A stretch of DNA of 64,000 nt from Zygnema circumcarinatum SAG 698-1b (GCA_037447605.1 CM074814.1:1488001-1552000); one strand, 5' to 3'; positions 1 through 32,097 are shown, numbered from the stretch's first letter. The notes: generated by a model from the letters alone, not told the origin. Made by a program: numbers and translations.

Positions 1-840
1 TCATTGCCAAGGCTAAGAATGCTCAGAAGCAAGCAGGTGAGATTGCACAACAGGGACAGGAGGCTGCAGAAGAAAAGTCTCAGGGAATTCTGGAGAGTGC
101 AAAGCAGTATGCGCAAGGCATTTATGGTGCAGCTCTCGGGCGTGTGAAGTCCACACCGGACGAAGTTCAGGACAGCGCTGCCAACGCAAAGGTATGCCTG
201 TTTACCTTCTGACGCCTAAAATTTTCTTGGCGACATAGTGACTATTCTCATCCGTGGGTTTCCTTGCCAACGAGGCAGTGCTGTAGCAATTTGTGTTCGA
301 GGAGCAATACCAACTTACAAAGCTATGTTGCACAAACGCTGAATGGTTTTTGGGCAGGAACAAGTTGCAACAGACCAGGACATGAAGGAGAAATCCGGAC
401 AGTCGTACGACATAGCCGAGGGGAAAGCTGGACAGCTGTATTCTTCAGCTCAGGAGCAGACTGCTCAAGCCTACTCTGGCGTAAGAGAGGCTGCAGGCGA
501 TTTGGTGCAGGGAATCAAAGAGAGATTGGGATACGCTGGAGAACAAGTGACCCAGGCAGAGGCAGCTGGGACAGCAGGAGGTGCAGCCACAGCCGAGCAC
601 AAGGCGAGTGAGCCAAGTTCTGAGACAGAGGGCAAATCCGCTTCAGTCCTTGAGACAACAGGAAATGTGGTTGTTGGAACTCTGCAGTACGTTAAGGAAG
701 CAGTACTCGGATCAGGCAGTGGCGATATCAACGAGTCCACGTCATCAGCAAAGACCGATGCGTCTGCAGGATCTGGTACTTCTGGAGTCTTCCAAACTCT
801 ATCAGGGAAAAGGGCAGCCAAGAAAATTTCCAAATTATAA
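1..840 (+). CDS. LEA-like hydrophilic protein (group 3/LEA_4-like), 5'-partial
   Basis: Exons <1-191 and 358-840 (AAG|GTATGC donor, GGGCAG|GAA acceptor, phase 0). Reads IAKAKNAQKQAGEIAQQGQEAAEEKSQG...EQVATDQDMKEKSGQSYDIAEGKAGQLYSSAQEQTAQAY, A/Q/E/K/G-rich with no Cys or Trp. The start lies upstream of the window. Confidence 0.75.
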
Positions 841-1776
841 TTCTGAAACTGAAACTTTCGTTAGCTTTAGTATCAGGTTTTGTCCGCATGGTCGCATGGA
901 TTGTCAGCGAGGGGTTTAAATAAGTCTCGCTTGAGATGGCGCTCCTCGAGACCAGTCAGATATCATTTGCGGTCTTTGCAGCTGGAAGAGCTCTCTGACG
1001 AGTCCCTAAGCTCCACCTGTACAGATGATCATGCACCGTTGCTGGCCCATGTCTCCGTCCATGAATGAATTACCTTCAGCATCCCGATTTCCTCTTTCGA
1101 CACAAAGTTTGAAATTGTGCATCCAGACTAGTCCATTCACTTAGCAGGTAGGCGGAGAACGTCTCGACGGTCTGTTAGGATACAGTGGAAGTGCGTAGAG
1201 CAATAGTGGTGCAGGCTTGGCCACTGAAGCAGTTAAGTCTGGCATGCAGGTGGGCGAGAACTAATTTCAAGAATCTTCAACCCTATATCCAAACTGTAAC
1301 AAGGATGCAAGCTGCTGTTTTTATCCGAATCAAGTTCAAAATATCTGAAAGAGTTACATTCTAAGGCAAAACTTTCCGATGGTGTTTTCCGGGATAATTT
1401 TGAGTGACTTGATGGGCTTACGTCTCGGTCTCAAACGATTTTTTTATGATATGCTTCACTGAATATGACCTGCACAATGGTGTTTCATTTCTGCCCGCTT
1501 TACTTGGTGAATGATTTAAACATGACATGGATCTTTTTTTAGCTTTGTTTAACACTTGGCCCACGCAAATGCCACTGTAAGGTTCACTGCCACGGCTTAT
1601 TAACGGTTGCACTGGAATGAGAGTAATTTTGTAGTTTGAAGTCGTAGAGTTAATTTGAAGGGTGAGTTCTCTCTTTAAACGTGCAGCTTTGTTTTGAATT
1701 TAACACGTTTTAACCCTCCGTATCAGAATAGTGTCGCGTCGGCTTGAGGAACAAATACGACGAGGTGAATTGCAAC

Positions 1777-2220
1777 TGCGAGTAAGCAGGAAAGTTCGAA
1801 AAAGAAGCCGCCAACGAGGAAACAACAAGCTTACTGTGAAAAGAGTAAGAATTACAAAAGTCACGAAATGAGGAGTAACACTTGAAATGCGACGAGAATG
1901 AAATTATAAGGAAACCGACGGAAGGAAAATGGTTTAGTTTGTGAAGGTGAATGTACAACAAACAAATCGAATCATGGGGGGAACATAGCCGTGTCTCCTA
2001 CATTACGCCGCTTGACTTGCTCTTCACAGTGTCCAGCGTGTTCTCTACCAAGCGTTGCGCGTTGGCAACGTTGCCTCCTGTCTTCCCCTGCGCAACATCT
2101 CCTACGCTGCCTACACGCTCCTTAACATCTGAAGTAACATTATCAGCGCTGCCTTTGGCGTCGTCTGCAACATTACCAAGATTATTCAAGAGAGACATCT
2201 CCCAGGGCCATGTCCGCATT
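1777..2220 (-). pseudogene. Inverted partial duplicate of the 3' end and 3' flank of the LEA-like gene at 9058-11014
   Basis: Reverse complement aligns to ~10976-11362 with scattered substitutions. Encodes RNADMALGDVSLE* and then, in a shifted frame, NLGNVADDAKGSADNVTSDVKERV...KSSGVM*. The 5' part of the gene is absent. Confidence 0.8.
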
Positions 2221-3244
2221 TCTTTCATTTCTCCTGCTGTTGTCGTGCATGCGCATGTCATGGCATCGCCATCCATCCTGTGACCCATGCCAGATCCACC
2301 TCCTTTTCATATGATGTGCTGAAGTTCATAACGAAGCAACACAACCACGGCCACGTCACTCGCCATAAGCATGACGTCAGACAGTTGCCTGGTTTGAAAC
2401 TGAGAAACTGTTGTAGTTCGGTGCGCAGTTGGAGATAACGGAACGGCGGCAGCAGCGAACGTCTTGGACACCTCCCGCTCTTGCCTCCCGTGCAAGGCCC
2501 GGGGCGGCCATGGCGCCTGCATCACCAGCTGCAGCTGCAGCAGCAGCAGCCTCGAAGGCGGGCGGGCCATGGCGTTGGAAAGGCCTGACAGAAGAGTCCG
2601 GGCGTGGCCGGACGAGGGTGAAGGTGGCGAGGAGGTATTTTTGGCTCCCGCTGAGCTGGTAATTCTGCACGTTGTCGTCTATGGATAACAGGAGCGGAGG
2701 AGGAGGAGATAGTGGGTGCTATTGTGCGCGTTCCTCTGTCCCCAGATTAGAGACGGTTTTTACATTTACTCTGCCCGAGAGTCTCAGCGGGAGAAAAAGT
2801 TCCCCCTTCCTATAGCGCTTGGTCATGCAGCAGGCACTCACGCAGAACTGTGCGAGATACTGGTGAGTTGGAGCGTGAATTTCTCCACTATTGAATCGTT
2901 TTATTCGAATTTAAGAAAATTGAACAGCCTTTGATACCTTTTTGGTCTTTGTTTTGGAGAATGTTTGTTCTGCAGTCACAGAAGTATGTCGAGGAGGCAG
3001 CAAGGATTGGAAGGCAGTTTGTTGTCTGCGCTTGCACGGATGAGGTGAGCGTTCAAGTACTCCCATATGCAAAGGATTGCACGACGTAGCCTGCGAGACT
3101 TATTTTTCAATGTGGTGCCTCACATACTTCATTCTGCTTACAAACTCTCAGATAACATTACTTTCTCTTGGACTGCTGCAGAAGGTCTCTTAAATCTTGA
3201 GCTCTACAATAATTTACTTGCTTGAATCGGATCTCTCTTGCATT

Positions 3245-3379
3245 AGGGGGTGTCAGACTTAAAAATTGTTCGTAAGTTTGAGACCAGAACGAGTACTTCG
3301 GTGACATCGCAATCCTGGTGCGGCGGAGTACTTACAAAACTTTTTTGTTCGTAAGATTTCGTTAAGTCTGACACCCCCT
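3245..3379. mobile_element. MITE 1 (135 bp), TIR AGGGGGTGTCAGACTTAA, 3-bp TSD ATT
   Basis: Perfect 18-bp terminal inverted repeats; ATT at 3242-3244 and 3380-3382. Confidence 0.88.
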
Positions 3380-3382
3380 ATT

Positions 3383-3980
3383 AGGGCGTGTCAGACTTAA
3401 CAAAATGTTACGAATATCGAGTTTTTAGTATTACGAGAATCGAGGTTACTAAGTACTAAAAATCATCGCTCCCCCGAACCTAAACCAAACCGAACGGAAG
3501 TCAACTGTGCTAAGTCAACGGGTCAACGTTGCGAAGATTGACCTGTGGGGTTTACTGAAATTGCATTTCTTCGCACGATTTTGTTCGCACCCAAAAGAGG
3601 CGCCGAAATGGACGTGCGAAGAAAATACTGGCGAAAATCGCGTCAACGTGACGGCATGGTTGTTTTCCCGGTTTCCCGCCCGCGCCCGCGCCCGCCCGTG
3701 ACGCGCAACACGACACAACGATCGCAACACGACACAACGACAAGCGGTCTCCGCGCGCCGCGCCGGCGCTGTTTCTAAGTCTGAGGGCCCCGCGCGAGGG
3801 CGAAGTTGCGAAGACGGCGTTTGGAGAAGTGCGAAGACGGCGATCGCGGAGTGCGAACAGGATCGCGCCGCGAGTGCGAAAAACTACGCTCGGGAATTTT
3901 AGTTTTACTGACGTTGACTCGAAATGTTACGAATATCGAGTTTTTAGTATTACGAGAATTTTTTAAGTCTGACACGCCCT
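3383..3980. mobile_element. MITE 2 (598 bp), same family, TIR AGGGCGTGTCAGACTTAA, TSD ATT
   Basis: Perfect 18-bp TIRs; ATT at 3380-3382 and 3981-3983; internal 38-bp direct repeat at 3403-3440 and 3922-3959. Confidence 0.88.
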
Positions 3981-3985
3981 ATTAG

Positions 3986-4423
3986 TGTGAAAGATGATGA
4001 TGCTGCGGGTTGTACGGACTGTTGTACGGAAGATGTACGGATGTATGTACGGACAGGTGTACGGATACTATACGGAATGTGTACGGGCGAAAGAGAGACT
4101 GCGCGTGTGAGAGAGTTCAGGAAGGTCTGTGCAGGAAGAGAAGTGTCAGGCGGAGGAGAAGCGTCTGGCGAAGCGTCGCAAATGTATGGTGCTCAGGAAG
4201 GAGGATTCAGAAAGGAGAATTCTGGAAGCTTAGACATTGGGTAGAAAAGAAGCGCTGCGCAGATGTAGAATACAGTGAAGAGAGAACAGGAAGAGAGAAG
4301 AGAGGATGAAGTGATCTGTAATGAGGCCTCATATGAAATAAAGAAGTGTTTATGAGTTGTGTGTTGATTTTGTGAGAACATGTGTTTTGTATGTCAAGCT
4401 TGAATGTGTTCTCTTCTGTCACA
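3986..4423. mobile_element. Solo LTR (438 bp) of an LTR retrotransposon, TSD ATTAG
   Basis: TGTGA...TCACA termini; 5-bp direct repeat ATTAG at 3981-3985 and 4424-4428; near-identical copy at 16506-16942. Confidence 0.9.
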
Positions 4424-4426
4424 ATT

Positions 4427-4585
4427 AGGGGGTGTCAGACTTAACAAAATCTTACGAAAAGCGTTACGAAAAAAAAGGTTACGAAAGTATTCCGCCGCAG
4501 GAGGATCGCGATTATACTGGAGTACTAGTTCTGATGTCAAACGTACGAACACGCGTACTGAATTTTTTTAAGTCTGACACCCCCT
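4427..4585. mobile_element. MITE 3 (159 bp), same family, inverted relative to MITE 1, TSD ATT
   Basis: Perfect 18-bp TIRs; ATT at 4424-4426 and 4586-4588; interior is homologous to the reverse complement of MITE 1. Confidence 0.88.
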
Positions 4586-4801
4586 ATTGTAGATGAATTG
4601 CCTGTGGCGTTCCTGCAATGAGCGTGAAAGCCTCTTCCTCATGGTTACATGCAATGCAGAAATTGATGACTTAATCTGCCTGCGTAAATGCTACCCATAA
4701 CGTGTAGGAAGCGGACAAAATGACTGGAGAAATCATGCGTTATACGATATTCAAAACTTTGGAGTACCTGCCAAGCGGGAAGAGCTCGTGGACGAGGTGA
4801 A

Positions 4802-4850: not shown

Positions 4851-5175
4851 ACCAATAACGAAAAAGGAACCCTCCAGGAACCCTGTACTGTACTGTATCG
4901 AACCTCCAGGTGTGTAGTACGGAACTATAAAAAACACTCCACCGTACGCTCGTACATACAGTACGCCAGTGCGGCTCGGGCGTGACCGTCCGTACGGTAG
5001 ACCTCGCATCCCCGGCCGTGGCAGGCGGAGGCGGCACGCGCCAGCCAGGGCGGTCGGGTCTCGGAGGGAGGGACGGAGGGAGAGGGAGAGGGAGAGGGAG
5101 AGGGAGGAAGAGAGCGGGCGGCTCTCTCCACCGCGCGAGGAGCAGACGGAGGGGGAGAGGGGGCGAGGGCCCGCG

Positions 5176-7956
5176 ATGGCTGGCGGCCAGAGCGTGCGCG
5201 TTTGCGTCACGGGAGGCTCTGGGTTCATAGCGTCGTGCCTTGTAGCGCGCCTGCTGGGAAAGGGCTATGCTGTCAGAGCCACAGTGCGCAATCCTGGTCA
5301 GCTGCTGGATTTCAACTGACTAATATAACGCTGCGAAATTGAAGGGCTTCATACAGCGCATGTATTGTAATGGAATGCAGAAACTGCAGTGTTTTTTGAT
5401 TTGCTAACGAATTGCGTTTGTAAGTGCTCAGTTTTTGAAGTGGTGGCCTCTCTCTATGTTTCATGTTTGAAAAAAAAAGGAAAAGAAAATGTGGCAATTT
5501 TGGTAAAATTGCCACATTTTTCTGCTATTCTATCGTATATGTCATGTTTTATGTGTGAATGCAAGGCAAGCTTTAACTTTGGAGTTAGGAGCATAAATGG
5601 CTATTGATCAGCGTCCGTTTATGGGAATGCTCCTTTGTGTTTAGGCGACACGGAAAAAACTGCCCATCTGCGAAGCCTACCATTTGCAGATGAAAGACTG
5701 GAGCTTGTACAAGCAGACTTATTGGAGGAGGGCAGCTTCAATGAAGCTGTCAAGGGTTGTGATGCAGTCTTCCACACTGCATCACCTTTCTTTGTCACAA
5801 ACATCACTAATCCCCAGGTACACATTTGGTTGCTAGGCGGACTCCAAAAAACTAGATCCTTTGCAGAAAATTTATGTGTGATCTTCTCTCGCTCTTTCGC
5901 TAGGAGACGAGTATTCGAGTAAGTATTCGTCTCCTAACGATGTGTCGTTTTGTCCCTGGTTTTGCCACGATGCAATGTGCAGGCACAATTACTCGATCCT
6001 GCAGTGAAGGGCACTCTCAATCTTCTCAGAGCTGTAGCAGCCACGGATGGGATCAGACGTGTTGTTCTCACTTCCTCCACTGCAGCTGTTGCTTGGGACC
6101 CAAACCGCGATCCCACAGCGCAGTTGGACGAGTCGTGTTGGTCCAGTGAGGAATTCTGCATACAAAATAAGGTGCTTGATGGCTTTGTGGAGGTTGTCGA
6201 TTCTTACAGTCTATTTGAGATGCACAAAAAGTTTCCATATAGCATCCTCGCAAGCTTGGCTTGGCAAACCGGGAGTAGCTGACTTTGTGTTTGACTCGAT
6301 TACAATCCTGAAATTGGCATGTCTGAAGCTAGCTTGTGGCCCTTCGAACAGTAAAGTGGATTTCAAGTTGCTCTTCCAAATGACTAAATGTGTAAAGCTG
6401 GAGTTTTCTTGCACCATGGCTATTTTTCGAATTTGCAAATGCTGAACTGTGTTGTGATAGGGAGCTCTCTTGGCTTACTATTCACGAAGTTTTGCGAGTT
6501 GACACGTGGCAGGATAGTGGTGATGGCGAGACTTGGGGATAACAGATGTGGTATCACCTTTCAAAGACTCAGGCAGAAAAGGCTGCGTGGAAGTTTGCAG
6601 AGGAGAAGGGCATCGATCTTGTGACGATCAACCCCGCCATGGTTATTGGAAAAATGCTCCAACCCACACTGAACACAAGTTCAGCAAGCATCCTCAAATA
6701 TCTCACAGGTTTGTACTTTATAGGGTTTCCTGGTCAAATTTTGTGAGCGAGTCGATTGCGGAGTTCTGTGTATCCCTTTCTGATAGTACACGCGACCAAA
6801 CATGTGTGTTGAGGATGGGCGGACTGACCACCTATTTTGGGCTAGTTTTGTTGAGCTCGTTTTAAATAAGAATGCTAGTTTTGTGTTTGATTCCTCTAGT
6901 GTCTCGTTGTCAAAATGAGGCCCTACTCATACTTGATCAGTGACTTACGCAATAAGGGTCATCTACTACATTATAACATCCAGCAGAGTTAGACTGTGGC
7001 AAGCTCTGCTTCCAAACCAGCAAAGAACCCTTCCCAAATGAAGTGAAGGTTGCGCTCACCCTCCATGTGCACTTCGGATTATGACCTGAATTCTTGTCAG
7101 TAGTAATGAATTCCACGCATTGAGGCTGTTGAATTCCCAATTGACTCCTTTCTCTGCTTTGAGTGTAGGGGAAAACCAGACCTATCCAAACTCCGTCATG
7201 GGGTGGGTCCATGTGGAGGATGTGGCTGATGCGCATATTTTGGCGTACGAGAACCCTAAAGCAGAGGGTCGGTATCTTTGCGTGTGTACGTACCTCCATT
7301 GGAGAGAACTGCTGACTGCGCTTCAGCAAATCTGCCCGGAAGCGCACATCACTCAGAAGTAAGGCCCACTGTCTGAGCCCCTCTTAGCTGTTGCTCTGAG
7401 CTCGCCTTGAAGGTAGAGGTCTTGTTTGTTCAGAAATGAAGTTCAAGCAAAGCGAAATTTGACATGTCAAGGAGCTTGTCAGTTCAGCTGGATACCCCCT
7501 TTTTTCTGCTCTCTCTTCGCAAGTAGACATGCATTTGTTATGAAGGAAGGTGAAGCTGAATAAATCTGCTGAAAATCAGCGTTTGTGATAGAGCATCGCA
7601 GATTGCGAGGGCAAAAGGTGCCCTGTGTTTTGTAATCTTTCCCACGTACAATCTGCGAATCTTGTTTGGGCTTTCGGAATGGTGTCTGAAGCAGTGAAGA
7701 ATGTTCCGACCACTACTTTTTTCTGCCGTCATCCACATGTTGGGAGAACATTCGTTCTCCGCTGGATGTCCTGACTGGCTAATCCTTTTGGAGCTTCCTT
7801 GGAGGTTGCAGGTGTGCAGATGACAACCCAGATGCTCTCCCACCTCTCCTCAACACGGACAAGCTGAAGGGCCTGGGGCTTCACTTCAGGACCATGCAAA
7901 CAATGCTCATTGATACGGCTGCAAGTCTCAGGGAAAGGGGCTTTTACAAGCCTTGA
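5176..7956 (+). CDS. Cinnamoyl-CoA reductase-like / DFR-like extended SDR (NAD(P)-dependent reductase)
   Basis: Exons 5176-5296, 5645-5817, 5983-6171, 6546-6708, 7169-7358, 7812-7956, all GT-AG and in frame. Motifs [12 protein letters not shown] (Rossmann), FHTASP, VVLTSS and catalytic WYHLSK (YxxxK). Confidence 0.93.
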
Positions 7957-8717: not shown

Positions 8718-8818
8718 GCCACGTCAGCCGGAATGCGCCACGTGGCGCACAATGCCGGGATTCCGGCAGCCACGCGACCGCCACGTATTCTTGAAGCTCG
8801 AAAATGCGCCACGTGGCG
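8718..8818. promoter_or_regulatory. ABRE/G-box cluster upstream of the plastid LEA-like gene
   Basis: GCCACGTC 8718, palindrome TGCGCCACGTGGCGCA 8734-8749, GCCACGTA 8780 and GCGCCACGTGGCG 8806, about 240-340 bp before the ATG. Function is inferred from the motif only. Confidence 0.6.
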
Positions 8819-9057: not shown

Positions 9058-11014
9058 ATGGCGGCTCTTCAGGCAGTTGGTCTGCACTACGCAGCGCCCG
9101 CTCCCGTGAATCCTTTGACTGTTAATAAGGAGCTTTCTTCAAAGTTTTCCAATCCGAAAACAAGGTTGAGCGTGAAGGCAAGGCCGTCACGTTGCATTGT
9201 GCGATCTTCGTCTGATAAGGTTCGTCTGCTTTTCATTGGTGGTGGAGATTGGGCAGGAGATTCAGAGTGACCTGCTTGCTTGCCTCAATATCTGTCGTTG
9301 GTACTATTTCGTGGGGAATAGCTGTAGGCAAAGGAGCATGGCGCCGCTCTTTGGTCATAGATTTTCTTGAGTTGGTCGCGTTGTTTGTGATAACATCCAA
9401 AGGCAATTACTATGTAGAAGGGAACTTCAGGAATGCATGCTAGTTGCTTTGAGGTTCACGTTCTCCTCTGCCGGATTTTGTGAAGAATTTTTGCTCACCT
9501 TAAAAAAATTTCCTCGACAGGATGACGAAACAGCTATTGCATCCCGTTTCGATGGAGTGAAGAGGGCTGCCATCGTCGGGTGCCTGTCCATTTTAGCGGT
9601 TGGATCGCAGCCACTCGTTTTCCCGTCAGCATCAGACGCCTTCCCACAGGACGCATTGCGACCAGCTGCCAAGATTGGTAGTCCTGCTGGCGCAGCGAAT
9701 TCATACGACCGAGTTTTTGCAGGCAAGGGAAAGATAGCTGGTGCAGTAGCGGATGCTGCAAAGGGCCCTGCAGACGCAGTTGCTAGCCTTGGAAATGGAA
9801 AAATTCAAGATCTGGTTGCAGATGCCAAAGGCAGCACAGTGGCTGATGTTAAGGGAAGGGCAGATGATGCCGCTGGAGATTTGAAGGGGAAGGTTGGAAG
9901 CTTGTTCGGTGGAGCAAAGTCTAACGTTGATAGCTCAGTCAGTGACGTGAAGGGCAAGGCGAGTAAGACTGCAGGGAATGTAACCGGTAATGCAGATAAC
10001 TTTTTTGGCGATGTGAAGAGGAACGCTGACAAGGCTCTTGGTGATGTTTCTTTCAACTTTGGTGGACTATCCGACGATGCAAGGAAAAGTGCTGAGAAGA
10101 CAACCGCAGAGGTGAAGGGCAATGTTGACGGTGCTGCTGGTAGTCTGAAGGGGAACGCCGATGGCTTTTTCGGTCAAGCAAAGGGGAATGTCGACAACGC
10201 AGCAGGCAGTCTGAAGGGCAAAGCTGATAATCTGTTCGGCCAAGCAAAGGAGGGAGTAGAAAGCTCTGCCGGTGATGCCAAGGGCAATGCAGATAATGCT
10301 GCGGAGGGCTTGAAAGGCAAAGCAGATAGCCTTTTCGGTGACGCGAAGAGGAATGTTGACAAGGCTCTTGGTGACGTTTCTGTCGACTTAGGTGATCTAG
10401 ACGGTGTGAAAGGGAATGTCGAAAAGACAGCTGGCGAGGCTAAAGGAAATGCTGATAGTCTTTTCGGCCAAGCAAAAGGAAACGTTGATAACGCTGCGGG
10501 TAGCCTGAAGGGAAATTCCAGTAACGTCTTCGGTCAGGCGAAAGGGAACGTTGATAGCTCAGTGGCAGATGCCAAGGGGAATGCGGATAATGTAGCCAGC
10601 GACCTGAAAGGCAAGGCTGATGATTTTTTTGGAAGCGCAAAGAAGAACGTCGATAAAGCTCTTGGTGATGTTTCAGTGAATTTGAATGACCTGACTGGTA
10701 GTGCGAAGGGAAACGTTGAGAAGACAACTGGAGACGTCAAGGGGAGTGCGGATGATGCTGCGGGCAGTCTCAAGGGCACAGCCGATAGCTTCTTTGGTCA
10801 GGCAAAGGGGAATGTTGACAGTGCTACTGGTGACCTGAAAGGGCAGGCCGATAGCTTGTTTGGGCAAGCGAAGGGGAAGGTTGACAGCTCGGTAGCTGAT
10901 GCCAAGGGCGCTGCAGATAACGCTATTGGGAGCTCGAAAGGAAAGGCTGACAACATTTTCGGCAGTGTTAAGCAGAATGCAGACAAGGCCCTGGGAGATG
11001 TCTCTCTTGATTAA
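9058..11014 (+). CDS. LEA-like 11-mer repeat protein with predicted bipartite chloroplast/thylakoid presequence (551 aa)
   Basis: Exons 9058-9219 and 9521-11014 (phase 0). N-terminus is S/A/R/K-rich (...ARPSRCIVRSS), then KRAAIVGCLSILAVGSQPLVFPSASDA, then tandem 11-mers of type (A/L/V)KG(N/K)(A/V)Dxx(A/F)G. Confidence 0.85.
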
Positions 11015-12159
11015 TCTTGGTAATGTTGCAGACGACGCCAAAGGCAGCGCTGATAATGTTACTTGAGATGTTAAGGAGCGTGTAGGACACTGTAGAGGAC
11101 ACGCTGGACACTGTAAAGAGCAAGTCAAGCGGCGCAGTGTAGGAGACACGGCTATGTTTCCCCCATGGTTCGATTTGTTTTTTGTACATTCACCTTCACA
11201 AACTAAACCATTTTCCTTCGTCGGTTTCCTTATAATTTCATTCTCGTCGCATTTCAGATGTTACTCCTCATTTCGTGACTTTTGTAATACTTTCTCTTTT
11301 CACAGTAAGCTTGTTGTTTCCTCGTTGGCGGCTTCTTTTTCGAACTTTCCTGCTTACTCGCAAAGATCTTTTGAAATCGCTAGACGAGACGAGCCTATGC
11401 ATGACAAAACACGGTATTGTTATTTGCTGATTTGCATCGTCTGTTGCATAAACTAATAAGCTTTTCTGGTTCTTTTAAGGGTCTTAAGGCTATCTTATAT
11501 CGTATAAAGAAATGAAGGATTTGTAGGGCTTTCAGAGTCTCTAGGTCTTCCAGAGCTTTCAGGGTTTCTGGTGCGTTCAGGGTTACTGGAGCGTTGAAGC
11601 TGTTCCATGTTGGTCGTGTCTCAAATTCGCTGTCCTTGGATTGACATGGAAACCGATGTTGAACGGATGTTTACGGCTTTCAGTCATACATAGCGAAGCG
11701 GTGGAACTGGGTCAACAGCTGTCCAATAGCATGATACAAGACATGGAACAGTCAGAATGGATGGATGCACGACGGAAATTTTCACACCATCTGCTCTATG
11801 GCGCCATCATATCACCACAACAATCCCAAGTAATATCATATGAGCAGAAACTGTAATTGGCAAAATAGATTAAATGGGAACCTAGGAATGGGGCGTATTC
11901 ATTCCACATCACAACAGGCACAGCCTGCAGCGATCTACATTGCAACTATACTTGTTAGAGGGAGAGAGCAAAAGCAAAAGCTGCAAAAGTTGTGACAGCT
12001 GCGACACTGCATATGTAAAGCAAACTTCATTTCTTAATGTCCTAATTTTAATTTACATCTGCAATGTTTGACACGATCGATCTTTGTTGTTCGATGACGT
12101 CCGCATCAAGGGAAAGATGCGCGTTTGTGCGCTGCGAAACTTCCCTGCGGCAGTTGCTG

Positions 12160-13811: not shown

Positions 13812-14022
13812 AGCGGGCAGCTGAGGTGGACCGTCTGGAACCTTTCCCGGGGAGAGGCCCTTAAAAGAGACGGTCCGGAGAAAGGAGTTCGGCAGTTCCA
13901 GGACCCAAGCTTGCGCGGTTCTCGGAGGTGCTCCAGGTTGCGGTGTTCGAGTGACTGCTCAAGCATCAGCAGGAGGAGGAGAAGGCGGCGTTGGAGGGCG
14001 GGTTGACTCGACTTTTTTCATC

Positions 14023-16942: not shown

Positions 16943-17250
16943 ACAACAACATGGAGCATGACCAACACAACATGCTCCACTCCCCACCACTCTCCCTCTC
17001 CTATACCAAAATCCCATAGAACGCCTTGTACTGCTTCGACACCGGAGTCTGCGAGAGCTGCTGGACTTTTGGGGGCACGGCAGACACAATACAGACACTT
17101 TGGGTGGAAATGCATACAGGTATTGCAACCGAGTGTCGTAACATAGACACAAGTTAAATCACCTTCCTGAAGTTTAAAAAAACCGCTGGGATAGACATAG
17201 GTTGAAAGTTCCTCAAATCTTAAGTATCAAACAACGGACTACAAATAATT

Positions 17251-18359: not shown

Positions 18360-19115
18360 TTATTTCAACTGGGAGCTGTTTTCGTCAAATGCGACTTCAT
18401 TGTTGGGCCCGTCTGAAATACTTGGAGCATCTTCCGCCGAGCTAGCAAGCTCCGCCACGAGGTTCTCGAGTTTCCAGTGACGTATGGAGATGCTGACTAT
18501 TTCTCCTCTGAAAGGCTCCGGCGAATCTGCTTTAACTATGTGAGAGATTTCACCAGTTTGTCTGAAGGCCATGGAGGCAACATACGCGAGCAGAGCAGCT
18601 CTCTTCATAGAAGTCATAGGCTTCGTCGATCGTTTCGACTGTTCAACTGAAACTGACCCCAAAGGATCCCTCTGAGTAGAGTCCACTCTTTCCTGCGCAC
18701 GAAAAATAAACAACATGAGACCACCGACTTTATGAAAAACCCGTTATGATGCCCGTACAAACGAACAAAATAATAAGAAAAATAAATGAAGATCCTTGCA
18801 AAGCAGCGCTGGCTTTCCCTTGGTGTACTTTTCAAAATATTAGAAAGTCGAGCTGACAAGAAGTACGACAGTTGGTTTTCTATCCCACTAGTTGATTACA
18901 GCTCTCAATGAACATACCTGGCCCTCCTTTCCCTGAGCGCAGCACGTTGCCGAGAAATCCCGCGCAACAGAGGTCTCTCGCCATTTAACACAGCTTGCAG
19001 TTCTGCCGCTTGTTGCAAAACCAGCGCTATTGCTCCCGAATCGATCTTGATCCATGCAGCGCAAGCTGCCTACGGCCATAGTCGCTGTCCGTCCACAGAC
19101 ATGTGCAGCTGCCAT
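18360..19115 (-). CDS. Orphan protein with predicted plastid/thylakoid-transfer presequence (~176 aa)
   Basis: Exons 19115-18918 and 18692-18360 (CAG|GTATGT, GCGCAG|GAA, phase 0). Contains MKRAALLAYVASMAFRQTGEISHIVKA|DSPEP. The 3' structure is uncertain because cryptic donors exist in exon 2. Confidence 0.55.
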
Positions 19116-19306: not shown

Positions 19307-19513
19307 CGCTATTTATGAGGCCTCCTGCCGGACAGGCTCCGGCCTCTCCATGCGCCAGGTGGCAGGTTTCGCACGTGTCCAGGTGTTCAAGACACGCGTC
19401 CAGAGCACGCTGCGACGTCTGGCGGAGCTGTTGCCTCTGATTGGACAACGTGGCAGCAAAGTGTCCACGTGGTGGCTAATACGACAGAACAGAAGTAAGC
19501 CTGCACACGTGGC
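19307..19513 (-). promoter_or_regulatory. TATA-like box plus ABRE/CE3 cluster for the 19115 gene
   Basis: ATAAATA on the minus strand at 19307-19313; CACGTGTC 19372; GACACGCGT 19391-19399 (ACGCGTGTC on minus, the CE3 core); ACGTGGC 19448; CCACGTGG 19465; CACACGTGGC 19504. Confidence 0.6.
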
Positions 19514-20486: not shown

Positions 20487-22597
20487 TCAATCCTTCTCAA
20501 TGGAAAACTTCCCGGTAATGCCTTCCGCACTGGCCTCCTTGGCCTTCTCCATGAGAGCCCTTAGATCCAAAACCGGAGGATTTGGGCTGGGACGTGGAGC
20601 AGCGATCTCTGCCTGTTCTGCGACCACGGGGATGACTGCCTCCTCTTCAACAGTGGGGGGCTCCACCTGTTCGATCTCTACTACTTCTGTGACTGGCTGG
20701 GGAGCCGCTTCTGTTACTGTCACTGGAGAGGGCTCTACTTCCTTCACTGGTGCGGGGGATGCTGCTTCTGCTGGAGGGGGGGGTGCTGCTTCTGCTGGAG
20801 GGGGGGATGCTGCTTCTGCTGGAGGGGGTGGTGCTTCCTTTACTGGAGATGGTGCTGTTTCATTTTCCTCTTTTGCAGCGATGGACTCTTCTTTCAATTT
20901 CTCGACTTTTTCTTTCGCTAACCGCCTGCCTTCTCCTCTGCTACTAGCCTCAGCTGCCCTTTGAGAAGCCGCCAGGGTCAGTGCCGCAGTTGATATGGCC
21001 AGAAGCGCTGCTCGACGAGAAGGATAGGGGCCCATCTTACAGCCAGAGTCCTGTGGCAGACAAGCACCGCGACCACCATCAAAAGCAGGCATAACTTGGG
21101 GTTCCAACTTTTTCGTAGTCAGTACAGACGTGATAAATAATTTCGCGCCAAATACATCATATACCAGCTTGTGATGCCAGGGATGGCAACTTTCAAGCAA
21201 TCCAATTATTTTGAGAGTATGCGCGCTGGTTTATGGGCTACCAGTCCTGCAACGCAGCTGGTTCACTTTGAACTTTGCAAGCATTGTCAGATAGAAACTT
21301 AATATTAATTTTCTCGCACATGCATCTTCCCATCATGCGTACTCAATACACATGGGAAAGCCACGCTTATTGACTTCGAATTGCTAGCCAACGACAAATA
21401 AGCAACTGCTACAATTCAATCCATATAGCCGTGCACAAAAGCAAAAGTTGTGATGCAGAAGCTGGAGGATCCTTGCACAAGCCCACATGAATTGGAGCAG
21501 GAAAGCTCTCCACGTCAATATTGCACAACCATACCATTAAAGAGACCAGCCTCAGCAGTCAGGATGATTCGAGCATGGAGCTATTTAGAAAGCGAGCCGA
21601 GTGCTTGGCGTTCTCGACTGACTGACATGCACAGCCTCGCCTGAGAAGCCTACTCTCCGTCGTCTTTTTATAACAGATGAGTTCTCATTTGCTTGCAGCA
21701 GGCACGATGGATGGAAGTGAACTGCCTTGGATGCTATTTACATTTAAAAGCTACTTGTGCATAAGAGGACATGCCTAACCATACTCATACTCATATTTGA
21801 TGCTTGTAAAAACGTGTAACGGGTCCGTTCATGAGCTGAAACTTGGCCTCCGTGGAATGATGTCTCAAACACAATGAGCAGGAAAGAAGGAATTGCGAAC
21901 ATTACTGGTCATATGCTTGAGGCTTAATATCTGCTCAGACTTAAATTCACATAATGGATTTGCATACTGAGCACGTGATAATGCATTGACGCACAGGGAG
22001 GCGAGATAGAGTCATTCGACGAGACATGAAGTGGTTTTTCCTTCGGGACAGGGGAGGGAAAGCAAGGAAGATGTAATTAACCTTCACTATTTTTTTCCGG
22101 GGTTAAAAAGGTAAAAACTGCATCCTCAAGGCATCCATTGCAATGACATTCAAACAAGGAATGAGTGATCAACTGGCATTGCCAATCCTCACACAAGCTC
22201 CATAACCGCCATTACTCACAAAAAAATTAGGGCGTCAAACTCTTCAGCAGTAGGCAGCGAACTTACGGTTGCTGTGGAGCAGCTGCCCTCTGCTGACATC
22301 CGCACTTGCACTGCGGCTGGGCGCTCATAGGACACAAGCTTCAGTCCCTGCTGTAGGCAGCAAAAAAAAATCAAAACACACAGATTAAGCTCTGGCAGCT
22401 TAGAGGTACGAGCTCCTTCATCCAAATCGCTGAAAACTCTCTTTTTTGCGAACCTCCTTGCAGTGACCGGAGGTCACACGCCCCGTGACAATGCAAGGCC
22501 CTAGCTTTACCTGCATCTTCGAGCCTGCAGCGAGGGCGGAGGTCGAGGGCAGCATAGCGTTCGCCGAGGCGGCCCCCAACAAGGCTGCGGCAGCCAT
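20487..22597 (-). CDS. Pro/Glu/Ala-rich protein with chloroplast transit peptide and twin-arginine thylakoid signal (~244 aa)
   Basis: Exons 22597-22511, 22350-22267 (NAGNAG acceptor) and 21050-20487, all phase 0. SRRAALLAISTAALTLAASQRAAEA is a Tat-type signal with AxA; it is followed by PPPPAEAA repeats. Confidence 0.75.
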
Positions 22598-23180
22598 GGC
22601 TGCCTCCTGCCTGCCACTGCCAAGCGCCAACGTTCCCTTTCCAAGCCAAATTGGAGCACGTTGTACCGCCGCCTGCCCGGACAAAACATTTCAGCTAGCG
22701 AACGAGTGGAACACCGACGTGGCGCCACAGGAGTGGTCAAGGCGAGCCTCGATTGAAACTTTTGAGCCAGAAATATTTCCCGTACGGGCGGCGGCCGGTT
22801 TGCGGCCCGGCCTGGTGCGGTACGGTACGGACCTGGACCTCGCTGCGAGTGACGTGACGCGGCGCGTGGCGGGGTGGGATCTCGCGGGCGGGCGGGCCCG
22901 CCAATGGCAGCGCCGCGGCCGAGTCGAAACGTTATCCGTGTGGCACGTGCAGGGGCGGTGCGTGAATGGCCAACGCGCCGGATGGCACCTTTGAGAATTT
23001 TGTTTCTGACCGTTTTCTTCCTTCGGTTTGGCGGATGGATGGATGGGTTAATCAGCTTGTTTGTGTGACCGGCGGTTGGTTCGTCGTGGTTCTCCATGTT
23101 CTTTTTGTATCGCCATCGCGAGATCAAGGTTTCTTCTTCGAGTTCAGTACGTACAGAAAGAACGACAAAGAGGAGGATTG

Positions 23181-23290
23181 GCATTGATCTCGCATGGCGA
23201 TGATGGACACGGACATGGACAAAGTCAACATGGAGAACCACGGGGAACCGGTCACAAATGACTTAGGGACGAAAGAAAAGCTATGAGCGG
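23181..23290 (+). repeat. Dispersed repeat family A, copy 2
   Basis: GCATTGATCTCGCATGGCG...CATGGACAAAGTCAACATGGAGAACCACGGGGAACCGGTCACAAATGACTTAG. Confidence 0.75.
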
Positions 23291-23948
23291 AACTCTGCTT
23301 CTGGGCCCAATAACAGCAGGGCTCCAGAAGCACCCGAGTGGAGGAGGAACGAGTATCGTAATAAAATGCAATGTAGTATACGGGCACGACCGTAGAACAA
23401 AGGCTAATGGACTTGTGCATCAGAACCATCAGATGGGCACGAGCCCCCATGCATGCTCGTCATCATGCGTGCTTCCACGCTAAAATTCACACTCACCCAC
23501 GCCACGCCACGTCAAATTTTACAAAAAAAAAAAGTATGGTTGGAGACCGCATGATTTTGAGGCCATGCCCTCTTAACCCCTAGACTCTTCATCCATTGAA
23601 CTGAGAAAAAATAAGCGATGTATCTGTGTGTTTGCTGTTCTCAGATCACATTTAATTCAGTCATGAAGCCCACGCCTAGTGCCTGCAGCAATGCATCAAA
23701 AGCCTGCAACTCAATGGTGCTTTAAGAAGGCCATTAGGCGTCTCCTCTATGGTTTGAAAGTCTCAGCAATAGACTAAAGTGGGACTCCCCACAGAAGATG
23801 GCAATTCTCCATAAGGTTGTCCAAGAATTTGAGTTTTTGTACAATGAGAACTAACACTAAAGTACAAACCCTACGGTTGGGATCTCAGTACGACCTCTTA
23901 AGGGGAAAAATAAAATCAATAAATTTGGACCCCTTGGGAGCCGCTTCC

Positions 23949-26900
23949 TCATATCCCCATCATGGGGGCTAAGTGTAGTAACTTCGGCACAGCGCTAGGC
24001 ATGAACTTCCTCGCGAAAAGGAAGCAGTAAGCATTGCGATCGTCATTCCAGACACACGTCTTATTTTTCCTCATCCCCCCTATCAACTTCTCGTTCACTT
24101 CAACTGCTTCAAAGGCTGTAGGATGCCACCCTCCTCGGCTCCAATCCACATACATCGTCGATCTAAAGGCCAAATCCTGTGGTCGCGTGATGTAAAGGTA
24201 AGTCGGAAAGTAATGCTCGTCATTATAACAAGAGCCTTTACAGTAATCTTTGAACTTCTTGTAATACTTTTGATCACTCACAATAGAGAGAGCCACCTCT
24301 CTCGTGAACTCAAACCACTGAGATCCTTTCCGCCATTGCTTAAGCGAAACCAGTGGCATGAAGGCCTGCTTATAGCGGCCTCTCCCCCAGGGTCCAGGAT
24401 CGTCCTTGCTGTTGATAAAACTTTTGTTCGTTAGCATGAAGTAGTTGTAGATAAAAGTGAAGTTATGGAGTGGAATACATGATTCTGAGACGAGGACAAA
24501 GCGGTCGTTCAAGGGATCAAGAAGAGCATTCGCCAAGAGCCGCTTTTCGGCATCCACCATCGACATTTTCCCCCATCCGACATCCTGGAAATCACAGCAC
24601 AACAAAAAGTGAGTCATGCAACTGAACAGGTCATTAACAAGAAGCTGATGTCCGGAAAATAGATTTGAAATACGCCATGGTCATTTATTGCAACACTCGA
24701 AAGTCACGAACAACAACAAGCTCAACCAATGCAGTTCCCTTCCTTCCAGAGACTGAAGTAAACCATCACAGAGTCAAACAATTGAGATTCCTCCTTTCCT
24801 GCTCTCTTGCACTGATAAGCGTCAGCCCTCTGCATGTGAATGCAGTATAACCAAACTGTACGAATATTTCATTTCGTTCGAATTGACTCCGCACAACATC
24901 ATTTTGCCTGTAATCGTTTCATCAAATCATCCAATTATTCTTTGACTCTGTACGGCTCAGTGATTCGGTTAGGCTCCTGTACCAGACATTCAATCCTGAT
25001 CATGCTGACACATCTTCATCACAAGAAGAAGAATTTCAGTTCTCCCTCTACGTCACTTGGCAGACTTGTGTCCACTCCAACTTAGCTGTTCACGCAAACT
25101 GAGCCGCAGCATACTATTAGCAACAGCGCTTTCAATTTGTATGTTGGAAGCTTTCCACGGGAGTCTACATTCACTTGCCCTCGATAGATGGTATAGAGGT
25201 ACAACCCTACACCCCCTTCTAGAAGCTAACACCGCCAATAAAAAGAATAGCCTTCAGTGGATGTTCGAAAATATGATCTTTCTCTCGTGCACCAGTCCTG
25301 TTCCATCACAAATGTTTGCTCGAATGCACTGTCAGGGGCCTACATACACTGAAGTGCCTGACTTCTTTATTTCTTAAGTTCAATTCTGAGCCTCGCATCA
25401 CTTGTTCCTTTACGGGCAAGGTGCATTTCGCTTAATAGCTTCAATTAAACAACCATTGTTTATTTTACATAAGCCAGCTGGGCAATCTGATGGCGGTATT
25501 TACACGTCATCAGATTGCTTGACTTCCAGCGGTCTCACATCACTTCAAAATTAATGCATCAACCAAAGGTCAGCTCAATGATGCCGAATAAAAGGCAAGC
25601 TGCATCAGCAAGCTGGCTTCTGCAACATGGACCTAGGGCTTGATTAAGCAACATCTTGGTCAATCAACATCCGTCACTTTTAACTGCTATTCTTTCAGCC
25701 TGCTGTAAAGTAAGACATGACTATACCAAATTTTGATTGGAAACACGACCACATATAAAGAACATCACCAGAATTTGACATTCCATCTGACTGAGTTCAA
25801 TTCAGAACTTGCGAAGGGCTTCCTTTGCTTCCTGAACTCTCGCCTTGGCGAGACAGCGCGTTGATCTGAAGCTTGCTTTGGAATTTTCGTCTTGCTGGGC
25901 TCAGAAGGCTTTTTTTGACAGCATTCAATTCACTACCTTCCAGCTTTTCCCTTCTTTCTCCTTGTGATTCAGTTTTAGGCTGACCTATAAAAGCAGCCTC
26001 GACTTTTCTAGTCCCTGCTGTCTGATGTCTGCACGAGAAGCAAATGAACATGGTAACCGAAAGCAGATCCACTCACTCTTCCCATGAAATGTTTCACTCC
26101 TCCTATACAATGGTGTGATGTTGCAAATGAGACTTGCAGCTTGACGACCTACTCACCCTCCATTGCCTAACTCACCTGGCTTGGAATCTGACGCCTCCGA
26201 AACGGCCGTGGGAGGGTGCGTGTGTACTCGTATCCAGGTTTGGCATGTATATAAATGGAATACTTTCTCCTATAGCCTCTGAAGAACCGCCACCAGAATG
26301 GCGCAAGCGGAAGATCCCCTCGAACCAAAAACAAAAATGCCAGCTTCCTCTTCGAACTAACATCCCACTTTTGCGGCGATCCCATCCCGGTTTGAAGCGC
26401 GCGTTCAAAGAGTTCCTCGTCGTCCATTTCGTGCCAAACATCACTGAATGGATGTGCCCCGGGCGGCGCATCCACATCCCCTCTAAGGAGCTGCGCTATG
26501 CTGTGCATTTCTGCTGAGAGCTCTCGATACGGTCTCTCCGTAGAAACGCTCTCTCCACTTGCATGCTCCTCTCTCTCCTTCCCTCCTTTGTCCTCCAGGA
26601 CTGTTTTATCGCTGGCCCCATCCTCATTGCCTTTTCCACAGCCTTCTGCGACACTTGCCTTTGAAGCTTCGTTCGTTGCAGGTCGCTGTTCGAGATTCGT
26701 CTGTCCAACATCTTCCGAGGTGGCAAGCCCTGCGTCCAACATGAACTGCAGCAGTCCTGCCTGCTCCTCAGCGCGCTCCCCTGCAAAAGAAGTGGCTTTC
26801 TTCCGACTATACAGGTTCCGGGTCACACCGGAGGAGCTTTGCAAACCGAGGAAAAACCCTAAAGCAAGGCCGCATATGAATGTGAGGGCCGCAATAAAGC

Positions 26901-26961
26901 GCCTGTGCACCTTGCCTATGTGCAAAGGGCGCTTTGCAGGAAGGGCGTGAGCTTCAATCAT
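23949..26961 (-). CDS. Core-2/I-branching beta-1,6-N-acetylglucosaminyltransferase family (DUF266/BC10-like), 473 aa
   Basis: Exons 26961-26176 and 24584-23949. N-terminal TM anchor; motifs KLAFLFL, YSIYIH, WGKMSMVDAEKRLLANALLD, FVLVSESCIPL, KGSQWFE, DEHYFPT, DWSRGGWHP, FARKF. Confidence 0.93.
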
Positions 26962-27594
26962 GCCGCCTGCGGCTTGCGTCCATAGCCCTCCGCACCTTCC
27001 CCCCTCTCCCTCCCTCTCCCTCTCCTCTCTCCGTCACCCTCTCCCTCTCCTCTCTCCGTCACCCTCTCCCTCTCCCTCCCCCTCTCCCTCTCTCTCCGTC
27101 GCCCTCTCCCTCTCTCCCTCTCTCCTTCCCCCCCTCTCCGAAAGCCGTCCGGAGTCCGTCCAACGTTGGCAGCGGCGAATGGGCGACACACGGTTTAGCG
27201 TGGGACGCTTTTGGGCAAACTCGGCATTCTGCAAGCGCGCACCGCGTCCGTACAGCACGGCTATCGTACGGTTTGACCGATCAGCGGTACGGCTTCGTAC
27301 GGCAGCCGTAGAGTCGGAGTCGGCAGGCCCTGCGATTGGCGCGCAGGGCGCGACCTCGGGCGCCGCGGCGACGTGACCACGGGGGGGACCTCTCGGTCGC
27401 CATCCATTCACAATTTTTTTTTTTTTTTAAACCTAGTCGATGGGGCCTCCAATGGCGATTAGCCACGTGTGCAAAAGGGGAGACGTGGCGAGTCGACATT
27501 GGACGATGCTCGAGTCTAGTTCGCAGTGCAGGAGGCCTCCTCCGTGTTACGCTACAAAACCGTTCATGCGCTACGTTGAAGGGCTTGGAATCCC

Positions 27595-27771
27595 AACCCT
27601 AAGAGCCTAAGCCATGCACCATAACCCCAAACTCATAGAACCCTAGAACCTTAAAATTATAATCCTAGAACCCCAACCCTACTCTTAACCCTAAGACCAG
27701 AAGCCCTAGCCCCTAACCCTAAAACCCTGACCCTACAACCCTAAAACTATAACCTTAGACCCTAAACCCTA
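27595..27771. repeat. Degenerate telomere-like (AACCCT/CCCTAA) tract
   Basis: More than 15 variants of AACCCTA (e.g. CCCTAACCCTAAAACCCTGACCCTACAACCCTAAAA). A shorter tract lies at 16141-16180. Confidence 0.65.
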
Positions 27772-28311: not shown

Positions 28312-28457
28312 AGGGCTGCGTTGTTGAGCCTAGGCATAGCTTTTTGCTCATAGCTTGTTCCTTTTGTCATTAGGCCCATTGTGACCAGTTCCTTGTGGTT
28401 CCCCATTATGATTATTTCCATGTACATTTGATGGCTTCGCCATCGTGAGATCAATGC
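28312..28457 (-). repeat. Dispersed repeat family A, copy 3
   Basis: Reverse complement begins GCATTGATCTCACGATGGCGAAGCCATCAAATGTACATGG...ATGGGGAACCACAAGGAACTGG. Confidence 0.85.
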
Positions 28458-28994
28458 CGCACCTCTCTCTCGTGCTGAGGACTGAAAGCTTCTCATCTGA
28501 TGCGTTTTTCTGACGGTTTCGGTCCAGTGATGTTTTTTTTCAAGCCAACGCCGATGAGTTACTGCCGTACGATCAGATTACGTGCATGCAGGCGGGCCCG
28601 CTCGGGATGTCAAATTTGCCGTCGCCCGCTCGAGATCCTGGTCGCATGCCAAGCACTGCCCGGCATTGACTCACGGATCGCGGGCCGGGGTGGCGGCGTG
28701 CGGGCCGGCCGCTAGGCATGCCATGGCATGCCATGCCATGCCATGAGATCATCCGACGTGGCGCTCCGCTGCCTTCCCCCAGCTGCATGCACGCGCGTCT
28801 CCGTGTCGCCATACGGGCGGACGGGCATGGAGGGGGGTAAAGGGGCGGGGTTGTCGGGTTACTCGCGTTGTATGTCTCAGTTAAACTGGCCGTTCGAAGG
28901 TTCCAGTTCCCGTGGAGGTCGCCGGCCAAGTCATTGCCGTGCGGCGACAAACCACTCGGTGCCTCTCTGTGACGCCGTCAGCGCGCCTGCTGGT

Positions 28995-29106
28995 GCCACG
29001 TGCCCGCTCGGCCGTCCGCCTTTCGCCACGTGTCGCAAACGTGGCTAAATGGCAATGCTTGAGCCAGCCGTCTATCCAGGACGTGATGTCGGCGAGACGA
29101 CGTGGC
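28995..29106. promoter_or_regulatory. ABRE/G-box cluster upstream of the 105-aa ORF
   Basis: GCCACGTGC 28995, GCCACGTGTC 29025, AACGTGGC 29038, GACGTGGC 29099. Confidence 0.5.
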
Positions 29107-29395
29107 GACCCTGGGGAGGCGCTACGTGGCTTCCTTGCTCTTGCCAGGGCGGATGCGCTCAGGGCTCGCTGGCCATCACGTTGAACTTTTCGGAGGTATA
29201 GGGACGACAGGCGGACTGCTTCGAGCGCTGAGGAGAGAGACTGAGGGCGGGAGAGAGAGGGAAGCAGTAAGTACCGGGAGGGAGAGAGAGACGACTGAGC
29301 AGACCGAGCAGCAGCAGCGAGGAAGGAGAGAGAGGCAGGGGAAGAGGGAGAGAAAAGGGAGGCGCAAGGCCGCGAAGGCCTGAAGGGCGGGCGCC

Positions 29396-29713
29396 ATGCA
29401 GAGCGTTCTGAAGAGGAAGTCAGGGCACAAGCTGAGCGAAGCGGTGGACGTGTGTCTGGCGGAGGTCACGAAGGCAAAGAAGGAGTTTTACGAAGCGAAG
29501 AAGAACGTGGATCACAGTAGAAAGTTGACCGATAGTCTCAAGATGGACTCTCGCATGCACGGCTCGCAGGTTCGATTCGAGGTGGCTGTCCTTAACTTCA
29601 GCAAAGTCTGCAAGTTGTGGAGCGAGAAGAAGTATGACATGGACGCGGAGCTCACCACGGAGGAACGTGACCAGCTTCTGCCTAAGGACCATGACCTGCA
29701 CACGGCAGCCTAG
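29396..29713 (+). CDS. Intronless 105-aa hypothetical helical protein
   Basis: GCCATGC start context, G/C-ending codon bias, GA-rich leader like neighbouring genes, K/E-rich helical segment. No family recognised. Confidence 0.58.
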   Translation: MQSVLKRKSGHKLSEAVDVCLAEVTKAKKEFYEAKKNVDHSRKLTDSLKMDSRMHGSQVRFEVAVLNFSKVCKLWSEKKYDMDAELTTEERDQLLPKDHDLHTAA

Positions 29714-32064: not shown

Positions 32065-32097
32065 GCCCATGCCCATGCCCGCCATGCCCATGCCCAC

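Follow-up and report, generated by a model that had tools for sequence, protein, structure and literature searches.

Do the stress-type genes crowded at the start of this locus form a jointly controlled desiccation neighbourhood, or are they neighbours by accident? The locus lies in a 64,000-nucleotide stretch of DNA from Zygnema circumcarinatum SAG 698-1b (GCA_037447605.1 CM074814.1:1488001-1552000), which was analysed at its full length and is called the window here; positions are counted from its first letter. An earlier, sequence-only reading had proposed an island of genes responding to desiccation or abscisic acid (ABA) at positions 1-29713, with ABA-responsive elements (ABREs) in the promoters and products aimed at several compartments. 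Its sequence observations were confirmed as a whole, and within the window they exceed chance. Its interpretation is plausible and was supported in part: the separately promoted, non-paralogous ABRE genes with differing predicted destinations stood, the residence of a product in the endoplasmic reticulum (ER) found no support, and the claim of an undescribed kind of cluster went too far. The central observation is that five adjacent non-homologous genes, designated G2 to G6, each have their own promoter with 4 to 7 strong ACGTGGC-type sites upstream of the gene. We give a probability of roughly 55% to the explanation that the locus is a stress-gene neighbourhood comparable to the gene islands linked to anhydrobiosis (ARIds) and to clusters of desiccation-associated genes (CoDAGs), situated in an alga that is a streptophyte and probably a zygnematophyte, the members of which would be induced together by an ABF-type factor and would owe their proximity to local gene birth.

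The window consists of nuclear DNA of approximately 50% GC, in which spliced genes, copies of transposons and microsatellites occur; an Rfam scan of it gave zero matches. Gene models were built by eye from open reading frames (ORFs) and GT..AG introns, and the frames were checked. Spliced models were analysed and searched one exon at a time, and the sorting signals of all genes were judged by inspection only.

ABRE/G-box cores were defined as ACGTG/CACGT, and a locus with at least 4 cores per 300 bp was regarded as dense. The window contains 100 such cores, against 64.6 +/- 7.9 in dinucleotide shuffles. Only six dense loci occur in the 64 kb (at 8.7, 13.6, 19.4, 22.8, 29.0 and 33.2 kb), all of them between 8.5 and 33.4 kb, and five of the six lie directly upstream of G2, G3, G4, G5 and G6. 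The first 34 kb hold 73 ACGTG cores and the last 30 kb 27; for strict ABREs the numbers are 28 and 7, respectively.

On the plus strand, the G2 array (8718-8817) has cores at 8721, 8740, 8783 and 8811, followed by a TATA-like CATAAAG near 8852, and the G3 array (13573-13813) has cores at 13576, 13614, 13760, 13773 and 13807, with a TATA-like TTAAAAG near 13862. The arrays of G4 (19373-19513; cores at 19373, 19448, 19467 and 19507; TATA-like CATAAATAG near 19310) and G5 (22658-22950; cores at 22658, 22717, 22852 and 22945) are oriented to the minus strand. Seven cores make up the plus-strand array of G6 (28998-29184), which has an additional ACGTGGC at 28756. The sixth dense locus (33189-33355, no strand assigned) contains 4 cores between copies of a repeat resembling a miniature inverted-repeat transposable element (MITE), with no recognisable gene within 800 bp on either side.

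Counted per 300 bp, the number of cores is 4 (G2), 5 (G3), 4 (G4), 4 (G5) and 7 (G6). Strict ACGTG(G/T)C elements number 4 (G2), 5 (G3), 3 (G4) and 5 (G6); at least two such proximal elements, the mark of ABF/AREB target promoters, are thus present at G2, G3, G4 and G6. Local dinucleotide shuffles reached the observed counts in 0/1000 (G2), 1/1000 (G3), 22/1000 (G4) and 0/1000 (G6) cases. The expectation that ABRE density would exceed that of GC-matched sequence was borne out: the arrays, with their 4-7 cores, compare with a mean of 0.67 and a maximum of 3 cores in 24 control windows of GC at least 0.58 (Mann-Whitney p = 1e-4, for five promoters picked post hoc). Other promoters in the window have 1-2 ACGTG cores within 500 bp.

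When the cores are oriented, their consensus is GCCACGTGGCG, with G at +5 in 24 of 35 sites and C at +6 in 25 of 35. We take this consensus to be the strong ACGTGGC ABRE of Em/Rab-type LEA (late embryogenesis abundant) promoters; it is also a perfect G-box. RY motifs were absent from these promoters and DRE motifs occurred at chance level. The cores lie 216-447 bp from the ATG in G2, G3, G4 and G6, and approximately 20-200 bp upstream of the TATA-like boxes. The sequence-only reading had put 4-5 cores at 110-250 bp upstream of four genes; its counts hold for G2, G3 and G4 (4, 5 and 4), G6 has 7, the distances are the larger ones just given, and the G5 array had been overlooked. The array sequences are mutually non-homologous, and therefore have not been dispersed by a transposon. 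Transposon-borne promoters were considered and rejected, the common repeat being a separate MITE-like element further upstream: three of its copies (170-230 bp) precede the ABRE arrays of G3, G5 and G6 by 200-500 bp.

The three LEA-like genes that had been claimed were all recovered, as spliced genes for hydrophilic proteins of 11-residue repeats. G1 (1-840, plus strand) is the 3' part of such a gene, with an exon 3-190 that is open at its 5' end, an intron 191-357 and a last exon 358-840; the window start cuts the gene, so that its promoter and N-terminus lie outside. G2 (9058-11014, plus strand) starts with an ATG at 9058 and consists of exon 9058-9219, intron 9220-9520 and exon 9521-11014; exon 2 opens with 'VKRAAIVGCLSILAVG...SASDA' and continues with about 450 aa of 11-mer repeats. 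G3 (14023-15450, plus strand; exons 14023-14582, 14742-14852 and 14966-15450) is predicted to encode a secreted LEA-like protein, with the signal peptide MARVSMALLAGAVLLLHVAGTTLAFG, two SWTDWA(K/R)EKV motifs and the C-terminus KIEL.

Residues A/G/K/E/D/S/T/Q/N make up 77-89% of the exons of G1, G2 and G3, against 46-56% in the ordinary exons of the window, and the grand average of hydropathy of the three genes' exons ranges from -0.39 to -1.47. The autocorrelation of residue identity has maxima at lags 11, 22, 33 and 44, and the helical hydrophobic moment is above that of shuffles with z = 2.7 (G1), 8.7 (G2) and 6.9 and 8.8 (G3); for G5, G6 and one helicase exon, the excess is not significant (z = 0.1 to 1.7). 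Tandem 11-residue amphipathic-helix repeats and a hydrophilic composition, the features of group 3 LEA proteins, are thus found in G1, G2 and G3. A six-frame composition scan detected LEA-like ORF segments in these three genes and in one short stretch of a glycosyltransferase gene only, and none between 27 and 64 kb. Three 11-mer LEA-like genes therefore lie inside 15.5 kb, at least three alike protective genes being characteristic of ARIds and CoDAGs.

Searches against Pfam gave no match to LEA_4 (PF02987), either for the G1 exons and G3 exon 1 at E <= 1 or for G2 and G3 exon 3 at E <= 0.1; canonical LEA, dehydrin and SMP families in Pfam, as well as NCBIfam, gave no matches. G2 scored below the cutoffs with CsbD (PF05532; 29.7 bits, cutoff 40) and with Apolipoprotein (55 bits). 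Judged from their sequences, G1, G2 and G3 are LEA-like by architecture, not by family membership.

In Smith-Waterman comparisons among G1, G2 and G3, the scores were above those of shuffled residues (z = 1.7 to 7.1), and equally good scores were obtained against a LEA-like protein of the zygnematophyte Mesotaenium endlicherianum (z = 2.8 to 5.4). Because the three proteins resemble each other no more than they resemble the Mesotaenium protein, they appear to share a generic 11-mer class without being recent local duplicates. Recent tandem paralogy was rejected on this basis, in agreement with the 'unrelated-looking' genes, as opposed to a tandem array of one paralogue, of the sequence-only reading. 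Paralogy of G4 and G5 was likewise rejected, the match being limited to a 7-residue (K/R)RAALLA stretch.

The sole detectable homologue among the genes studied is that of G2, namely this M. endlicherianum protein, ME000480S07854 (P0001; z = 13.7). Both proteins share an N-terminal layout (MAALQAV... in G2, MALQAV... in the relative, which has RR...AYA). For G3 exon 1, an exhaustive HMMER search among 1.84 billion representatives found no relative (one irrelevant match). G4 exon 2 and the last exon of G1 had no homologue in a word-indexed search, metagenome contig scans with G3 exon 3 and with a 26-mer from G2 exon 2 yielded nothing, and look-ups of the exact products of G6, of the long G2 ORF and of a small duplicate designated G0 (two starts) returned no record.

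G0 (1777-2220, minus strand) is an inverted partial duplicate of the 3' end and 3' untranslated region (UTR) of G2, with about 96% identity to its source segment at 10976-11362 (plus strand), which comprises the last 13 codons and the 3'UTR. It is the only clear local duplicate in the neighbourhood, and its 96% identity indicates that local duplication is ongoing. The copy keeps open a CsbD/LEA-like ORF of 66 aa (2198-2001; CsbD 17.4 bits, under the 40-bit cutoff), with one ACGTGGC and one TGACGTCA about 155-190 bp upstream of it. The 3'UTR of G2 itself contains a decayed extension of the gene's repeats in a different frame, which a TGA and a 56-bp deletion close. These features suggest that G2 was formerly longer and was truncated by a frameshift common to both copies; the small ORF in the G0 copy may have been 'rescued'.

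G4 and G5, both on the minus strand, are the two genes with lumen-type presequences that had been proposed to start at 19115 and 22597, and they were found as such. G4 (18360-19115) is a two-exon orphan (exons 19115-18918 and 18692-18363, stop 18362-18360), in the protein of which an S/T/A-rich N-terminus that contains Cys precedes 'MKRAALLAYVASMAF...HIVKA' and a short, acidic mature part. G5 (20487-22597) has exons 22597-22511, 22350-22267 and 21050-20490 (stop 20489-20487), and combines transit-peptide-like exons with the twin-arginine lumen-transfer domain SRRAALLAISTAALTLAASQRAAEA and an acidic Pro/Glu/Ala-rich part. The CCATGG at 22597 provides an ATG on either strand; a coherent gene with an upstream promoter exists on the minus strand only. 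The orphan at 29396 was recovered as well: G6 (29396-29713, plus strand) is a single exon with a clean ORF of 105 aa, coding for a basic helical protein. Its AlphaFold model contains helices 10-55 and 58-78 at low confidence (pLDDT 67, pTM 0.33), and its neighbours in a protein atlas are BAR-like leads alone, each below 0.9.

In G5, two S/A-rich exons precede a textbook twin-arginine lumen-transfer domain, which consists of SRR, AALLAISTAALTLAA and SQRAAEA, with AEA as the cleavage motif. G4 has KR and AALLAYVASMAF followed by ...VKA, and G2 has KR and AAIVGCLSILAVG followed by ...SASDA, after a transit-peptide-like exon 1. The bipartite presequence of lumen proteins (transit-peptide-like N-terminus, RR/KR, a hydrophobic core of about 12-15 residues, AxA-type motif) is thus recognisable in G2, G4 and G5, and in each of them the transit-peptide-like part and the transfer domain lie on either side of an intron. 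Pfam TAT_signal gave no match in the transfer-domain exons of G4 and G5 or in the Mesotaenium relative of G2. The protein-language-model clusters nearest to G5 consist of N-terminal fragments from the lumen proteins PsbQ (0.87) and PsaN (0.80), which serve as a lead only. G1 ends in ...KRAAKKISKL and a stop (808-840), a canonical peroxisomal targeting signal of type 1 that conforms to (S/A)(K/R)(L/M) and that the sequence-only reading had overlooked; from this -SKL, G1 is predicted to be a peroxisome-directed LEA-like protein. In G6 no sorting signal was seen.

The C-terminus of G3 is GKIEL, and ER retention was rejected for the absence of K/HDEL; its signal peptide therefore means just entry into the secretory pathway. 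Coverage of the ER by the module, as had been suggested, is thus unsupported, and the several compartments that do find predicted support are the thylakoid lumen (G2, G4, G5), the secretory pathway (G3) and, by its -SKL, the peroxisome (G1).

In the proposed chain of events, water loss would act through SnRK2 or CDPK signalling, probably without perception of ABA. These kinases would phosphorylate a single ABF/AREB-type basic leucine zipper (bZIP) factor, which would bind the ACGTGGC arrays and would thereby induce the neighbouring genes in parallel. The products would be directed to the thylakoid lumen (G2, G4, G5), the secretory pathway or apoplast (G3), the peroxisomes via -SKL (G1) and the cytosol or nucleus (G6); on drying, the LEA-like proteins would form amphipathic helices, shielding membranes and proteins in these compartments. 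The upstream steps have support in related algae: under hyperosmotic stress, the single ABF of Mesotaenium is phosphorylated; in DNA affinity purification sequencing it recognises ABF3-type motifs, and some of its sites lie upstream of a LEA gene that is induced. In zygnematophytes the ABF axis is reported to be independent of ABA (bioRxiv 10.64898/2026.05.21.726866). Because the pathway is framed in this way, the 'ABA response' of the sequence-only reading is better read as an 'ABF/ABRE-type response'. In both Zygnema and Mesotaenium, the five most strongly induced transcripts include that of a LEA gene (PMC12820192, which describes stress RNA-seq series for the two algae). We infer from the sequence that G1 to G6 would be induced together, and their clustering may be non-random. 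Most likely they lie close together because lineage-specific genes arose and were duplicated locally and diverged fast; we do not think that the locus is an operon-like or domain-level regulatory unit.

Other genes and repeats are interspersed. Upstream of a gene of the NAD-dependent epimerase/dehydratase family (approximately 5170-7362, plus strand; CCR/DFR-like by eye), the first 500 bp contain one ACGTG core. The glycosyltransferase gene mentioned above belongs to GT14 (Core-2/I-branching, 'Branch'; 23949-26961, minus strand) and has three ACGTG cores 410-522 bp upstream (27371-27483). Between this gene and G6, at 27704-27771, lies an interstitial telomere-like repeat of the CCCTAAA type with about 4-5 units. 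An arabinogalactan-protein-like gene (31788-31285, minus strand) encodes a signal peptide and an Ala/Pro-rich protein with the coding repeat (GCAGGT)x23 at 31427-31563; a 626-bp (GCCCAT)x104 microsatellite is situated upstream of it (32065-32690).

The MITE-like family comprises at least nine copies of 100-230 bp with 75-85% identity (13042-13266, 23169-23292, 28312-28471, 32961-33124, 33447-33677, 33712-33827, 49566-49696, 50429-50558 and 51118-51240). A 439-bp element is present in two copies that are 97% identical (3986-4424 and 16506-16943), one of them within a transposon stack at 3242-4588. A run of 10 N at 49488-49497 marks an assembly gap within a repeat-rich stretch.

ACGT-type motifs were also seen apart from the six arrays. 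Between G2 and G3, a GC-rich stretch without clear coding potential carries three overlapping TGACGTGACG motifs (C/G-box hybrids) at 12787-12807. At 52856-52930, two ACGTG cores, a CTATATATTG TATA box and an ATG directly before GTAAGA are found. Transcription may begin here at an unannotated start; the gene that follows about 850 bp downstream, at 53773, has a transit-peptide-like start and appears by eye to be plastid-type and pyruvate-kinase-like.

Several points weigh against a co-induced stress-gene neighbourhood. The supposed island is interrupted by the bystander genes (NAD-epimerase-family and GT14) and by transposons, and no transcript, contig or close relative of its genes was retrieved by the look-ups and homologue searches. 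G1, G2 and G3 remain below every curated LEA family threshold in Pfam, and the gene models of G4, G5 and G6 are predictions from sequence signals. Five such promoters in a row may also be less unusual than they appear. If ABRE-rich, stress-inducible, lineage-specific genes are numerous, they could have become adjacent by accident and each respond alone, as would fit the independent array sequences, the unrelated genes and transposons between the members, and the sixth dense array at 33.2 kb, which has no gene. We consider such a chance neighbourhood somewhat unlikely: the region from 34 to 64 kb is without any 300-bp window of at least 4 cores and without any LEA-like ORF segment, and three LEA-like genes in 15.5 kb far exceed what an even spread of a few dozen to a hundred over about 75 Mb would give, by a rough, uncomputed estimate. 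A bolder reading would be an ancestral 'desiccation island' that predates land plants, in which non-homologous ABF targets are co-regulated at the chromatin level and supply several compartments simultaneously, a hitherto unrecognised class of LEA-like and acidic protectants of the thylakoid lumen is conserved in zygnematophytes, and G1 to G5 are one selected unit; this we regard as unlikely.

A further caution against the stress-gene neighbourhood is that CACGTG is also a site for bZIP and basic helix-loop-helix (bHLH) factors responding to light and other signals. The arrays could accordingly be G-boxes for light, redox or other bZIP/bHLH input (HY5/GBF/PIF-type), and the grouping one of light-controlled genes for chloroplast proteins. 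Many of the sites are indeed perfect CCACGTGG palindromes, three of the five genes have products with predicted plastid targeting, and the promoters lack the RY element and have DRE at chance level. However, the extended consensus fits the classical ACGTGGC ABRE of Em/Rab-type LEA promoters, the densest arrays belong to the secreted LEA-like G3 and the non-plastid orphan G6, and dehydration regulons typically contain LEA-like coding sequences; we regard light control as distinctly improbable. It is very unlikely that G4, G6 and perhaps G0 are annotation artefacts, with the nearby arrays driving non-coding RNAs or nothing. Consistent with an artefact, these three had no homologues or records in the searches, the fold of G6 is of low confidence, a gene-less array does exist at 33.2 kb, and a crude codon-usage scan (trained mostly on LEA exons and of poor discrimination) scored G6 modestly and G4 not at all. 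Against it, every ORF begins downstream of an array and a TATA-like box, at a reasonable distance from them, and the GT..AG intron of G4 falls exactly between the transit-peptide-like and the lumen-transfer-like exons, as in G2 and G5. Our preferred explanation remains a neighbourhood of stress genes comparable to ARIds and CoDAGs.

Compact clusters of protective genes induced by desiccation are on record, namely the ARIds of the midge Polypedilum vanderplanki and the ARIds/CoDAGs of Xerophyta viscosa (PMC6394720, quoting Costa et al. 2017). For Selaginella lepidophylla, tandem arrays with co-expression have been described (PMC8558194). These are the same kind of object, and the claim that a cluster of this form was undescribed was too strong. 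Like ARIds and CoDAGs, the locus is a compact cluster enriched in LEA-type and other protective genes, of the sort thought to be jointly switched on by drying. Unlike them, its members are non-homologous or share a generic 11-mer class only, bystanders are interleaved, and the host is a streptophyte alga; ARIds and CoDAGs are defined by measured desiccation-induced transcripts and are mostly paralogous expansions.

The proteins themselves resemble group 3 LEA (LEA_4) and bacterial CsbD-like proteins in being hydrophilic, rich in Ala, Lys, Gly and Asp, and built of 11-residue repeats with predicted amphipathic helices; unlike those families, they have no LEA_4 match and their CsbD scores (29.7 and 17.4 bits) are under the 40-bit cutoff. 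The multiple ACGTGGC/ACGTGTC elements near LEA-type gene starts resemble those of the ABF/AREB-ABRE regulon that controls LEA genes in land plants, the factor and kinases of which exist in zygnematophytes; the LEA-linked ABF site reported for Mesotaenium is far from the transcription start, and the arrays described here are promoter-proximal (bioRxiv 10.64898/2026.05.21.726866). The LEA set of Arabidopsis spans the cytosol, nucleus, mitochondria, plastids, ER/secretory pathway and peroxisome-related structures (PMC8698616, citing Candat et al. 2014); the summary of known LEA locations in PMC8698616 does not mention the thylakoid. Unlike in that set, the differently targeted genes described here are neighbours, and three of them have lumen-type bipartite presequences. 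We are not aware of Arabidopsis LEA genes with different destinations that are physically grouped in this way.

Desiccation-gene clusters (ARIds/CoDAGs), control of LEA genes by ABF and LEA sets that serve several compartments have thus been described already; the present locus differs in its lineage, in having members that are not homologous to one another, in its very clean promoter arrays and in three presequences of lumen type. The locus is a candidate addition to the known class of desiccation-gene clusters. If its genes are co-induced, this clustering would be extended to the algal sisters of land plants, and five independent ACGTGGC arrays within 21 kb would offer a compact natural test bed for an ABF-ABRE circuit thought to be older than ABA perception. 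The locus also provides testable candidate protectants for the thylakoid lumen and for peroxisomes, among them G2, which has a Mesotaenium relative of the same presequence layout.

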